This document shows, piece by piece, positions 35,613-39,644 of a stretch of DNA of 64,000 nt. The stretch covers positions 1,612,001 through 1,676,000 of the forward strand of contig CDROCS010000506.1 in NCBI GenBank assembly GCA_977020255.1, in the 5' to 3' direction. The stretch comes from Obrimoposthia wandeli (Eukaryota). The translations under genes and the position numbers were made by a program. Every line of letters begins with the position of its first letter. Within the stretch, counting starts at the first letter, position 1. The notes below the pieces were generated by a model, which was given only the letters and a program-made list of their open reading frames with translations, made no database searches and was not told the origin of the DNA.

Positions 35613-36698
35613 TTAACTGGTTTTTTGCAAATATTTAAGTGATACCCGTTGCGTAAGCTTAGTGACTAGTTCATATGCGATGGTACCTATGTGTTCAGCC
35701 ACTAATTCAGCTGGTAATCCGGCGCCCCACATAATCACTTTGTCACCCACTTGGTCTTGGCAATCAGCGCCTAAATCAACCGTTAACATATCCATCGATA
35801 CACGACCAACAATTGGGACAATACGACCATTAATTAGCACTGGTGTACCTTCTGGTGCCATGCGTGGATAACCGTCACCGTAACCGACAGCTACAACACC
35901 CAATCGCGTATCTTCAGGTGCGCTCCAAATACCACCATAACCGGTTTTTTCGCCTTGCTTAATATCATGCACAGCGATCAAGTCAGTGGTTAATGTCATC
36001 ACTGGTTTGAGGTTATGTTCTACTGCAGTAGCACCTATCATCGGTGATACGCCATACAACATAATACCAGGGCGGATCCATTCACGACGTGCAGTTGGCC
36101 ATGCTAAAACACCCGCCGAGTTAGCAATCGAATGTTCCCCTTCTTCACCAGCGACTAATTCATCAAATAAATCAATTTGGCGCTGTGTAATACTTGGGTC
36201 AGCTTCATCTGCACAACTAAAATGCGTCATCAACCGCGCAGGTTGCACCACATTAGTATTGTTTTTTAACCGCTCAATCGCACGTTTGCAGTTATCTGGG
36301 CGGATACCCAAACGATGCATGCCGGTATCCATTTTCAACCAGACATGAATTGGCGCATCTAAATCCGCCTCTTCTAGCTCAGCCAATTGCTGTTCAATAT
36401 GCACCGACGTCTGAATGTTATTAGCAACTAAGATCGGTAACTCATCTGTCGAGAAAAAACCTTCCAGCAGTAAAATAGGTTTCACAATGCCGCCACTACG
36501 CAGCATTAATGCCTCTTCAACGCGTGCGACAGCAAATGCGTCAACCGCTTTCAATGCTCTCGCAACAGCCAATAAACCATGGCCATAAGCATTCGCTTTG
36601 ACAACGGCCATTATTTTACTGTTTGGGGCAATGCTTTTAATCTGTTTAACGTTATGCTGCAATGACTGCAAACATATTTCAGCCGTTGCTGAACGCAT
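35613..36698 (-). CDS. alr: Alanine racemase
   Basis: AVVKANAYGHG PLP lysine, KMDTGMHRLG, GYGDGYPR, GRVSMDM; directly after dnaB. Confidence 0.97.
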   Translation of the reverse strand: MRSATAEICLQSLQHNVKQIKSIAPNSKIMAVVKANAYGHGLLAVARALKAVDAFAVARVEEALMLRSGGIVKPILLLEGFFSTDELPILVANNIQTSVHIEQQLAELEEADLDAPIHVWLKMDTGMHRLGIRPDNCKRAIERLKNNTNVVQPARLMTHFSCADEADPSITQRQIDLFDELVAGEEGEHSIANSAGVLAWPTARREWIRPGIMLYGVSPMIGATAVEHNLKPVMTLTTDLIAVHDIKQGEKTGYGGIWSAPEDTRLGVVAVGYGDGYPRMAPEGTPVLINGRIVPIVGRVSMDMLTVDLGADCQDQVGDKVIMWGAGLPAELVAEHIGTIAYELVTKLTQRVSLKYLQKTS

Positions 36699-36707
36699 AG
36701 TTATTCC

Positions 36708-39644
36708 TTAATAATCATCATCATATGCAGGACCAGTAAAGTTATCAAAGCGAGAGAATTCACCGTTAAAAGTTAATCTTACTTTACCAATTGGGCCGTT
36801 ACGTTGTTTACCGATAATGATTTCGGCGGTGCCTTTATCTGGCGAATCATCGTTATAAACTTCATCACGATAAATAAACATAATTAAATCGGCATCCTGC
36901 TCAATCGAACCTGATTCACGTAGATCCGAGTTAACTGGGCGCTTATCAGCACGTTGCTCCAACGAGCGGTTAAGCTGTGATAAGGCAATAACAGGACATT
37001 TAAGTTCCTTGGCAAGGGATTTCAATGAACGCGAAATTTCGGCAATTTCTAAGGTTCTGTTTTCACTTAACGCGGGCACTCGCATCAACTGTAGGTAGTC
37101 AATCATGATCATACTGATACCGCCGTGGTCACGGGCAATACGACGTGAACGCGAACGTACCTCGGTCGGAGTCAGACCAGAGCTATCATCAATATACATT
37201 TTACCCTGTTCCAGCATGCTCTTCATGGTTGCAGATAAACGCGCCCAATCATCATCATCCAACTGACCAGTACGTACTTTGGTTTGGTTAATCTTACCGA
37301 GTGACGCGAGCATACGCATCATGATCTGTTCTGCAGGCATCTCCAGCGAGAAAATAACCGCAGGTTTGTCTTCATTCAATGCCGCGTGCTCACACAAGTT
37401 CATCGCGAAAGTCGTATTATGAATACATATATCTTCAGCAATAAAGTTATGCGTATCAGGTACTGTTAAGTCATAAACCTGCTTATCACCTTGATGCTCA
37501 ATAGCGACAATTTCATCCCAATATAAATCAGATTGACTTAACTGCTGCAGATAATCATCATTTAATAATTCAGCAAACAAGGCTAAACGCTGACGAGAAA
37601 TACCTCTGGCACTCTCACCTTGAAGATGTGGGTTGTAGCCTTCTGGATACTCTTTACCTGCTGCATTGAATAACGTTCTCCACGACCGATCAGCTTTTTT
37701 CAGTAAAATATACTGATTCACAGATTCAGGCATCGTATCTTTATTAGTGTGCTGTGCTTTATCTGCTAATAATTTAGATACATCTGCAAGTGCCAGCTCT
37801 TTAGCAAAAATACCAATTTCACTAATGAATGTTAGGATACTTTGCTGATCTAATATTTCTAATTCATAAGGTGTAGCGCCATCATACTTACTTGTTTTTT
37901 CACGCACTTTGGCAATGATACCGAAACGCAGTAACAGATGTTGCAAGCCATGCACTAATGCGTAACTTGAAGAGGCATAACTTAATCGAGCTTGGTTATT
38001 AGCCTGTACAAAAGCACTACCATCACAGCTAAATAAGCGATTAATGAATAACGCTAATTGTGCTTTAGGCAAAATATAAACAGCATCAGGAATGGTTTTT
38101 TCTAATGCACTTTTATGCCATAACCCATGTGCAGCTAACCATTGAGTCACGCTGTTAATACTATTCTTCGCCATTGCCGTATAGCTCGGCACATCAGCAT
38201 CCGCTAACGTGAACTCAAGCTTTTCTAACAACACTGTTAATGTATCTTGTTCAGGAACACAATGACCATTACACCACTGACTGACACTGGCTTTACTCAC
38301 CGATAATATGCCAGCAAGGTCATTACCAGTGATATTTTTAGCTGCCATACTCTGCGTGAGTAAGGCTGAAAATTGACTTCTATACGCTTCAATTTGTGAC
38401 GTTTCAGCGCTGACTCTAAATGAAGGCGTTCTGTCTTCTGCTAGTACAGGTTTCACTGACACTGCATCAAATTGCTCAATGGCATTAATGAAATCCTGGC
38501 TAATAACCGGGTTCACATTGGTAAACATTGGATTCGATTGTGTCGTGCCACCGTCCGCAATGAAATATGCTAATGCTTTAACTTCATGCTCAGGCATCAC
38601 CTTATCACCAAAATAAGGTAACTCACGCGGTACAGCAATTTTTTCACCTACGCTAATATCTTCTAATGGTAACCAGCCATTACCAGTTAAAAACGGATGC
38701 GTCAAAGTCGTCGATATTTCTCGACCTAATGCAGTTTTAACTTTAAATACAGGTTTCATACCATCATCAACAAACGCAGATGCTTGAGTGACAGAAAGCG
38801 TATAATCGCTATTCACTGTAGCCAAGTTCGCTTGCTCATTAGCAACCAACTCATCAATACTATGCAGTTGACCTGTTAATGGGTCTAAAACTCGAGAGCC
38901 TGAAACAATACACTTACCCATCGATGGACGTGCAGCCACAATAATCAAATCAGACGGTTGGAATCCGGTTGTCATGCCATCAAGATCACCATAACCAGAA
39001 GCGACACCGGTCACACCGTCATGCGGGGTTTGGTAAAGCTCTTCGATTTTATCAACGGTTTCTTGCAGTACGCTTTCTAGATTTTTCGGGCCTTGGCCTT
39101 CGCTCTGTCTTGATTCTGCAATTTGGAATACTTTACTTTCAGCTAAATCGAGTAGGTCGGTACTTTTACGCCCTTGTGGCTCATAACCTGATTCACTGAT
39201 ATCGCTGGCAACCGCAATAAGTTCACGAATGACCGCACGCTCACGCACAATATTCGCATAAGCGGTAATATTCGACGCACTTGGGGTATTTTTAACAATA
39301 TCACCCAGATACGCAAAGCCGCCTGCATCATCAAGCAGCTCTTCGTTATCTAGCCATTCGGAAACGGTAATAATGTCCAGTGGGATATGTTGATCCACCA
39401 GCTTCGCCATTGCTTCGAAGATAAGTTGATGTGGGCGGCTGTAAAAATCTTTCGCCACAATAAATTCGGTTACACGATCCCAGGCTTCATTATCAATGAA
39501 TAAGCCACCTAAAACCGATTGCTCAGCCTCAAACGAGTGCGGCGGCACTTTTAGCGCATCAACAGCACTGTCTTTTCTATTTTTATCTTTTGAAAACTGA
39601 TTCTGAAACTGGTTTTGACGTTTGTCGGCCATGCTAGTGCTCAC
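36708..39644 (-). CDS. dnaB: Replicative DNA helicase DnaB precursor containing an intein (978 aa; about 479 aa after splicing)
   Basis: PPHSFEAEQSVLG, AARPSMGK/TTFAMN Walker A (interrupted), MIDYLQLM, DLRESGSIEQDAD, KQRNGP. Confidence 0.97.
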   Translation of the reverse strand: MSTSMADKRQNQFQNQFSKDKNRKDSAVDALKVPPHSFEAEQSVLGGLFIDNEAWDRVTEFIVAKDFYSRPHQLIFEAMAKLVDQHIPLDIITVSEWLDNEELLDDAGGFAYLGDIVKNTPSASNITAYANIVRERAVIRELIAVASDISESGYEPQGRKSTDLLDLAESKVFQIAESRQSEGQGPKNLESVLQETVDKIEELYQTPHDGVTGVASGYGDLDGMTTGFQPSDLIIVAARPSMGKCIVSGSRVLDPLTGQLHSIDELVANEQANLATVNSDYTLSVTQASAFVDDGMKPVFKVKTALGREISTTLTHPFLTGNGWLPLEDISVGEKIAVPRELPYFGDKVMPEHEVKALAYFIADGGTTQSNPMFTNVNPVISQDFINAIEQFDAVSVKPVLAEDRTPSFRVSAETSQIEAYRSQFSALLTQSMAAKNITGNDLAGILSVSKASVSQWCNGHCVPEQDTLTVLLEKLEFTLADADVPSYTAMAKNSINSVTQWLAAHGLWHKSALEKTIPDAVYILPKAQLALFINRLFSCDGSAFVQANNQARLSYASSSYALVHGLQHLLLRFGIIAKVREKTSKYDGATPYELEILDQQSILTFISEIGIFAKELALADVSKLLADKAQHTNKDTMPESVNQYILLKKADRSWRTLFNAAGKEYPEGYNPHLQGESARGISRQRLALFAELLNDDYLQQLSQSDLYWDEIVAIEHQGDKQVYDLTVPDTHNFIAEDICIHNTTFAMNLCEHAALNEDKPAVIFSLEMPAEQIMMRMLASLGKINQTKVRTGQLDDDDWARLSATMKSMLEQGKMYIDDSSGLTPTEVRSRSRRIARDHGGISMIMIDYLQLMRVPALSENRTLEIAEISRSLKSLAKELKCPVIALSQLNRSLEQRADKRPVNSDLRESGSIEQDADLIMFIYRDEVYNDDSPDKGTAEIIIGKQRNGPIGKVRLTFNGEFSRFDNFTGPAYDDDY
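37416..38912 (-). mobile_element. 499-aa intein with LAGLIDADG homing endonuclease in the DnaB P-loop
   Basis: Block A CIVSGSRV, block B TTLTHPFL, block C LAYFIADGG, block D KTIP, block E RLFSCDGS, block H LQHLLLRFGI, block F VYDLTVPDTHNF, block G ICIHN; the +1 residue is Thr. Excision restores SMGKTTFAMN. Confidence 0.95.

Follow-up and report, generated by a model that had tools for sequence, protein, structure and literature searches.

The DnaB helicase is the most intein-rich bacterial protein, with 317 inteins; three insertion points are described in it, a and c in motif H4 and b in the P-loop, where the example shown has Thr as the +1 residue, and few proteobacterial cases were found (Novikova et al. 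2016, PMC4760082). At point b, DnaBi1 of Mycobacterium smegmatis is a class-3 mini-intein with a block F Cys as nucleophile and Ser+1, and it is without an endonuclease (Kelley et al. 2018, PMC6195587). Here we describe an insert in the dnaB gene of a 64-kb stretch of DNA (contig CDROCS010000506.1 of assembly GCA_977020255.1, filed under Obrimoposthia wandeli, positions 1,612,001 to 1,676,000), called the window below and numbered from its first letter, whose nearest genomic match is Moritella dasanensis. The insert is very probably a complete class-1, endonuclease-bearing intein at the known insertion point b, resident in a Moritella dnaB. The identification is correct but ordinary in that DnaB is so rich in inteins and the P-loop a catalogued insertion point: Moritella is a new host genus for a very large family that was already known, to which the element adds a member.

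The host gene is a single open reading frame (ORF) of 978 amino acids (aa) on the minus strand, opening with GTG; public Moritella dnaB records start at an ATG four codons downstream and give 974 aa. Reading the bases directly placed the insert at exactly 37416–38912, which is 1497 bp or 499 aa in frame, between Lys244 and the Thr of the Walker-A motif (ARPSMGK/TTFAMN, the slash marking the insertion point). The codons at its edges are AAG for Lys244 (38913–38915), TGT for Cys1 (38910–38912), AAT for the terminal Asn (37416–37418) and ACG for Thr+1 (37413–37415). A first-pass annotation, made by a model from the letters alone, had described a full-length homing intein between K244 and the next Thr, and its boundaries agree with ours to the base, the strand being the one thing it left unstated. 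The site is insertion point b, between the Lys and Thr of Walker-A GK(T/S), as in PMC4760082 and PMC6195587. Pfam recognized a DnaB N-terminal domain (3e-35) and DnaB_C (8e-100) in the ORF with the intein separating them, and in the middle Intein_splicing (PF14890, 1e-24) and LAGLIDADG_3 (PF14528, 3e-19, at aa 285–367). SGSIEQD, the second known DnaB intein site (point a), is uninterrupted at aa 911–917, in line with the annotation's distinction between an occupied P-loop site and an empty SGSIEQD site. In intein-free Moritella, the 475-aa DnaB runs through ARPSMGK/TTFAMN continuously and without a gap, and the N-extein is 96% identical to it. The gene interrupted in this way is normally essential.

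Residue conservation was read from a family alignment of 58 sequences. C1, T69, H72, D481, H488, H498, N499 and K371 are invariant in this alignment, so that the splicing blocks noted earlier (Cys1, TxxH, block F Asp, His-Asn) hold across the family, and the full class-1 set is present: Cys1 with Thr+1, TxxH in block B, Asp and His in block F and His-Asn in block G. Class-3 inteins have no position-1 nucleophile and use a triplet of Trp (block B), Cys (block F) and Thr (block G), the block F Cys being the nucleophile (PMC6195587). A class-3 mechanism of the mycobacterial DnaBi1 type was ruled out and the Moritella intein assigned to class 1, because it has Cys at position 1, D481 in block F and Ile497 before the terminal His-Asn. 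In the PDB the intein sequence matched the DnaB mini-inteins of Synechocystis (Ssp) and Nostoc punctiforme (Npu) as well as the RecA intein of M. tuberculosis (E 5e-22 to 6e-14). We also built an AlphaFold2 model on the 58-sequence alignment (mean predicted local distance difference test score, pLDDT, 93.3; predicted template modelling score, pTM, 0.88), whose best PDB matches in Foldseek were full-length intein endonucleases: TliVMA (7QSS, E 4.5e-19), PI-PfuI, PhoVMA, PI-TkoII and PI-SceI. The N-terminal part of the model has the HINT fold, superposing on the RecA, DnaB and VMA inteins with a root-mean-square deviation of 1.1–1.9 Å; failure to find this fold on modelling had been named beforehand as grounds for giving up the identification. 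From the conserved residues and selection we infer that the precursor undergoes protein splicing. A Cys three residues before the terminal Asn (C496, 37425–37427, in C-I-H-N) has counterparts in the family, CVHN or CIHN being found in the majority of 113 members.

The endonuclease is complete by the same kinds of evidence. Each of its two LAGLIDADG motifs keeps an acidic residue followed by Gly (D120 in FIADGG and D297 in FSCDGS), as the first-pass annotation had noticed, and both residues are kept in at least 90% of the 58 sequences. The order of elements in the model is that of a pseudo-dimeric alpha-beta-beta-alpha-beta-beta-alpha core, with Foldseek matches to PI-PfuI, PI-SceI and I-OnuI-type enzymes in addition to the Pfam match (PF14528). 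Because selection on the endonuclease and on the two extra modules described next is as strong as on the splicing domain, we predict that the enzyme is active and that its target is long and set in a highly conserved gene.

The first of these modules lies between the two LAGLIDADG halves, where the model places four helices (aa 171–232). The window copy alone is under the Pfam cut-off (HTH_31/HTH_3, 22.1 bits vs 27); across the family, 38 of the 58 members match HTH_3 (best 5.7e-10), and the family profile of the stretch matches the solved Cro/C1 domain 2KPJ (2.4e-11) and the P22 C2 repressor (7e-8) in the PDB. Given these family matches and profile matches to solved Cro/C1 domains, the stretch can be taken as a real Cro/C1-type helix-turn-helix (HTH), conserved family-wide. 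The second module (aa ~389–460, with model helices at 396–406, 411–417, 440–450 and 453–459) sits between the endonuclease and the C-terminal HINT strands, a position that in archaeal VMA inteins is taken by the 'accessory domain'; for two such domains an HTH-like character and a modulating effect on cleavage are described (PMC8966425). By analogy with the accessory domains in other inteins, both the HTH and the C-terminal helical module would most likely add DNA contacts. Solved intein endonucleases carry their accessory domain after the endonuclease and before the C-terminal HINT part (inside HINT in PI-SceI); a Cro/C1 HTH placed family-wide between the LAGLIDADG halves is a different arrangement. 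Our search of the literature found no description of a Cro/C1 HTH within an intein endonuclease, including one placed family-wide between the LAGLIDADG halves. At least one public record, that of P0013 from Ectothiorhodospira, bears the name 'XRE family transcriptional regulator' on account of its intein HTH. The window HTH also has a Cys pair, WCNGHC (aa 214/218, 38257–38271), that is not conserved. The parts of the gene are collected in Table 1.

Table 1. Parts of the interrupted dnaB gene and of its intein, in window coordinates
Feature	Coordinates	Strand	Basis
dnaB precursor gene (N-extein + intein + C-extein)	36708..39644	-	ORF list; Pfam DnaB N-terminal, DnaB_C
N-extein, aa 1-244, ending ARPSMGK (first part of Walker-A/P-loop)	38913..39644	-	Bases read; intein-free Moritella DnaB
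HINT N-terminal part, intein aa 1-105; block A Cys1 38910-38912, block B T69xxH72 38697-38708	38598..38912	-	Invariant residues; Ssp/Npu identity; model beta strands
LAGLIDADG core, first half, intein aa 106-170; motif 1 LAYFIADGG, D120 38553-38555	38403..38597	-	Model; conservation
Cro/C1 (XRE)-type HTH module, intein aa ~171-242	38187..38402	-	Pfam across family; profile; model helices
Connecting helices and LAGLIDADG core, second half, intein aa 243-388; motif 2 LFSCDGS, D297 38022-38024, K371 37800-37802	37749..38186	-	Pfam; conservation; model; Foldseek
Helical module, intein aa 389-460	37533..37748	-	Model helices; position vs PMC8966425
HINT C-terminal part, intein aa 461-499; block F D481 + H488, block G H498-N499 37416-37421	37416..37532	-	Invariant residues; Ssp DnaB mini-intein matches
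C-extein, 235 aa + stop, starting at Thr+1 37413-37415 and containing SGSIEQD 36894-36914	36708..37415	-	Bases read; ORF list

We then placed the intein among its relatives with a word search scored on the intein alone, in which 2193 proteins among the scored candidates reached E≤1e-5. Nearly all were DnaB proteins in two size classes, about 965 aa with one intein and about 1375 aa with two, and their hosts are Halomonas/Vreelandella, Endozoicomonas, Aliidiomarina, Ectothiorhodospiraceae, Thiothrix, many cyanobacteria, Rubrobacter and Chloroflexota. The intein could be delimited in 113 of the 120 best matches, with a median length of 497 aa, and all 113 read GK/C...HN/T, sharing the Thr+1 that had been read from the window. 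Lengths above 1200 aa, fitting two inteins, were found in 78 of the 120.

The closest described systems are the class-1 LAGLIDADG inteins at point b, catalogued for Actinobacteria and Cyanobacteria (PMC4760082) and here represented by Halomonas/Vreelandella, Endozoicomonas, Aliidiomarina, Nostoc, Microcoleus and Rubrobacter. They share with the Moritella intein the GK/T point, Cys1, Thr+1, the HN end, the length of about 497 aa, the endonuclease and the HTH, at 40–56% full-length identity; the Moritella copies differ in their host genus and in forming their own clade on a long stem. In the window gene, moreover, site a is empty, whereas those 78 of the 120 best matches have a length that fits two inteins. 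The first-pass annotation had called the P-loop site best known from mycobacteria, and this background holds. The inteins of M. smegmatis (DnaBi1) and M. leprae DnaB do have the same host protein, point b, a P-loop hydroxyl residue as +1 nucleophile and a helicase function expected to depend on splicing, but they are class-3 mini-inteins with Ala1, a WCT triplet, a block F Cys and Ser+1 and without an endonuclease (PMC6195587), whereas in the Moritella intein position 1 is Cys, block F has Asp481, the residue ahead of the terminal HN is Ile, the +1 residue is Thr and the endonuclease is complete. The mycobacterial intein thus has the site in common without being a close relative, the close ones being class-1, Thr+1, endonuclease-bearing inteins of Halomonadaceae, Endozoicomonadaceae and cyanobacteria.

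Among solved structures, the Ssp (1MI8) and Npu (4O1R) DnaB mini-inteins are the nearest splicing domains by sequence (E 5e-22 and 7e-21, 33–35% identity). Both are class 1 and from the same host protein; the solved forms are engineered mini-inteins without an endonuclease. We take the Ssp and Npu inteins to be at insertion point a, in the SGSIEQD of motif H4, the site at which one of our two-intein matches (P0047) ends HN/SIEQD. TliVMA (7QSS), PI-PfuI (1DQ3), PI-TkoII (2CW7) and PI-SceI (1VDE, 1LWS) share the combination of HINT, a two-motif LAGLIDADG core and extra DNA-binding modules at just 9–15% sequence identity; TliVMA is likewise a P-loop intein with an HTH-like accessory domain. No paper found in the literature search mentions a Moritella intein. 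Viral contigs scanned with the family alignment held distant relatives only (best segment at most 47% identity, full-length at most 44%, best E 1e-48), and a phage vector was set aside for want of a close phage copy among them. In the intein tree, inteins of Rubrobacter (Actinomycetota), Candidatus Thiosymbion, Candidatus Parabeggiatoa and a Desulfobacteraceae metagenome-assembled genome (proteins P0103, P0099, P0042 and P0056) nest in an otherwise cyanobacterial DnaB-b clade, which suggests cross-phylum transfers of the DnaB-b intein family.

Within Moritella the intein is patchily distributed. It is present in the dnaB of the window, Logan contig L027, M. dasanensis, M. yayanosii (whose complete genome, 4.43 Mb, holds an interrupted dnaB at the fetched locus) and several metagenome proteins; the 475-aa intein-free form is found in M. 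marina, M. viscosa, PE36-like, JT01, F3, sp. 24, sp. CP056120, Urea-trap-13 and L089. The gene order araC-like, cytochrome c, dnaB, alr, tetR is common to all these Moritella loci. The window DnaB is identical to no stored protein, the closest being that of L027, with 13 differences. DnaB inteins had been called sporadic in gammaproteobacteria, and this holds there and inside the genus as well: many Moritella are without the intein. Its presence in all relatives, which the earlier annotation had named as speaking against recent mobility, is therefore not what is seen. On the tree of the downstream flank (alr + tetR, 12 taxa) the intein-bearing strains do not form one clade (approximately unbiased test, p 5e-94), requiring at least three changes, and on the extein tree they are likewise not monophyletic (p 4e-5).

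Intein-free alleles also occur very near the window. L089, which is intein-free, groups with the window and L027 (support 96/95), with identities of 96.8% in the exteins and 95.6% in alr (alr dS, synonymous divergence, 0.21), and its alignment to the window continues on either side of a clean gap of 1497 bp. A cluster of eight differences at extein nt 417–441 separates the two. In public contigs from a marine metagenome (X2) and a food metagenome (X6), 37415 is joined to 38917 with four replaced letters; the junction is the exact intein-free allele, with GGA AAA coding Gly-Lys. The X6 contig with the empty allele (record 21) differs from the window at 2/203 and 5/326 flanking bases (7/529), where over the same ranges L027, the nearest intein-bearing relative of the window, has 4 and 8 differences and the intein-free reference species have 43–63; intein contigs are found in run X6 too, at lower depth. 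Scanning JGI metagenomes for the exact pattern with flanks of the window type gave no window-like empty allele. A degenerate pattern found eight loci there, and the five that align to the window dnaB belong to other Moritella species, because they are just 91–92.5% identical to the window exteins. The X2 and X6 contigs are short, come from mixed samples and could be chimeric; taken with L089, they still point to a presence/absence polymorphism among very close relatives. Intein-free alleles, which the first-pass annotation had proposed looking for in sister strains, do exist in Moritella. Gain and/or loss of the intein has been repeated among Moritella lineages and looks current, continuing down to strains of about 96–99% identity. 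Moritella is a culturable psychrophilic genus, and the presence and absence of the same intein in lineages this close provides a situation for a direct test of the homing cycle.

The intein itself is an old resident of the genus. In a family tree of 116 inteins, the four from Moritella form one clade (support 100) on a long stem, within a gammaproteobacterial group that contains Endozoicomonas and Halomonas inteins; path lengths are about 0.1 within Moritella and about 1.0 to any outsider. Between Moritella species, dS is 0.56–0.87 for the intein, 0.47–1.45 for alr + tetR and 0.30–0.48 for the codon-biased exteins (araC values for pairs with M. yayanosii were disregarded because of indel artefacts), and the intein has 39% GC where the 64-kb window has 41%. 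Because of the single clade on its long stem, the dS and the GC content near that of the window, we conclude that the intein entered Moritella once, long ago, and is not a recent import; the horizontal acquisition proposed earlier is thus upheld for the distant past. Intein dS is 1.4 times host dS in the closest pair and 0.6–0.8 times in distant pairs, which is suggestive of some transfer within the genus, though saturation and codon bias can explain such values; for that reason dS was rejected as a clock for deciding between gain and loss.

All domains of the intein are under purifying selection. The dN/dS ratio is 0.12 for the N-terminal HINT part (aa 1–110), 0.08–0.14 for the middle part including the HTH (aa 111–245), 0.06–0.09 for the endonuclease part (aa 246–455) and 0.00–0.03 for the C-terminal HINT part (aa 456–499). 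Under the homing-cycle model, selection on an endonuclease is expected to be this strong only while empty alleles are still being invaded. Current mobility is plausible because of this selection together with the polymorphism within the lineage, and on this indirect evidence we lean slightly towards an intein that is still mobile.

The dnaB exteins of Moritella are, in addition, a clear recombination mosaic. Between the dnaB genes of M. yayanosii and its intein-free PE36-like sister, 12 differences fall in the outer 838 nt (1.4%) and 49 in the central 590 nt (8.3%), a significant mosaic whose maximum chi-square was reached by 0/300 permutations. The most divergent block lies 230–400 nt downstream of the intein site, which is not at the centre of the pattern, and no donor can be named. 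Just after the site comes a 180-nt stretch that hardly differs between the window, M. dasanensis, M. marina and Urea-trap-13, a mixture of intein-bearing and intein-free genes. A co-conversion tract was dropped as proof of homing, since the mosaic is off-centre and the adjoining block is common to both allele types.

The cycle we propose combines established intein chemistry with the conserved residues. Translation of dnaB would give a precursor of 978 aa in which the intein divides the Walker-A loop and which could neither bind nor hydrolyse ATP. Splicing would begin with an N-S acyl shift at Cys1, after which trans-esterification would move the N-extein from the thioester to the side chain of Thr+1, the P-loop Thr/Ser doubling as the splice nucleophile. 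Cyclisation of Asn499, aided by His498, would free the intein, and an O-N shift would rebuild GK-T, so that the products are a normal helicase of 479 aa and the free intein of 499 aa. The latter would act as a single-chain, two-motif LAGLIDADG enzyme, with D120 and D297 holding metal ions and the HTH and C-terminal helical module extending the contact with DNA. It would be expected to cut the uninterrupted GK/T coding sequence of intein-free dnaB alleles, and recombinational repair from an intein-bearing allele would copy the intein in (homing).

Extein, intein and extein are spanned unbroken by a 4.5-kb RNA-library contig (X4 record 18), which fits removal of the intein at the protein level, although contaminating DNA is a possible source of this contig. 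Several considerations weigh against a mobile, splicing intein of this kind. That it splices and that it cuts DNA are both deduced from the conserved residues together with selection. The closest empty allele (X6 record 21) is known from a short de Bruijn contig, assembled from a mixed sample, that may be a chimera. Intein dS is 0.6–0.8 times that of host genes for distant species pairs, and no recent transfer between the sampled species is seen; nor could a clean co-conversion tract linked with the intein be demonstrated in the Moritella exteins. Finally, vertical descent with five or six precise losses fits the tree as well as three gains do, so that three gains, five to six precise losses or a mixture all fit the distribution. 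Hardly any weight attaches to the idea that the insert is something other than an intein, such as a foreign gene that became fused, a bacterial intein-like (BIL) domain, an intron removed from the RNA or an artefact of assembly. Apart from there being an insertion at all, nothing speaks for it; metagenomes and the independently assembled M. dasanensis and M. yayanosii sequences carry the same insert at the same codon, it is in frame and stop-free with all intein blocks including the terminal HN and Thr+1, the RNA-library contig retains it, and no ORF of at least 80 aa except dnaB overlaps 37416–38912 on either strand of the ORF list. A more serious competitor, although we think it unlikely, is an intein that splices and does not move, handed down vertically from an early Moritella ancestor with an inactive or irrelevant endonuclease, its patchiness reflecting repeated precise loss by recombination with intein-free alleles. 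The tight clade on its long stem, intein dS of the same order as host dS between species, a GC content near that of the window and the failure to find a clean co-conversion tract all suit such an element, as does the finding of no near-identical intein common to distant species. An unused endonuclease would, however, be expected to decay, the outcome seen in mini-inteins such as M. smegmatis DnaBi1 (PMC6195587), whereas here its dN/dS is as low as that of the splicing domain and D120, D297 and K371 are kept. On the 12-taxon tree, pure loss also takes five or six independent precise deletions against a minimum of three changes.

The source of selection on the whole element could also be a role for the intein as a conditional switch, in which temperature, pressure, redox state or metal ions would control splicing and thereby make helicase supply and replication follow the environment. 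A P-loop position in an essential helicase does tie activity to splicing, the mycobacterial intein at this site is documented to splice conditionally (PMC6195587; see also PMC7360933 and PMC8557812), and Cys1 and the frequent Cys near the C-terminal end (C496) are present. Many Moritella from the same cold, deep habitats are nonetheless without the intein, which argues against a needed regulatory role, and a switch leaves the selection on the endonuclease and HTH parts unexplained; we regard it as improbable. Slightly more doubtful still is the broader idea that the intein is more than a passenger, through conditional splicing that would gate the supply of active helicase in a cold- and pressure-adapted genus, through an excised intein (made one-for-one with DnaB and carrying a Cro/C1 HTH) that might bind chromosomal DNA as a regulator besides homing, or both. 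This idea rests on the purifying selection on all domains and on the mycobacterial precedent for conditional splicing at the same DnaB site. A class-1 homing intein in dnaB, old in the genus and perhaps still moving within it, is the reading we prefer.

Two minor observations concern neighbouring and variant genes of the Moritella loci. The alr gene just downstream of dnaB (35613–36698, minus strand) encodes 361 aa in the window and L089 and 357 aa in the other fetched Moritella loci, a C-terminal length difference that tracks the window's close lineage. M. viscosa has a shortened 443-aa DnaB record (P0122, 'DnaB-like helicase C-terminal domain-containing protein') beside the normal 475-aa form, which is probably a start-site or assembly difference.

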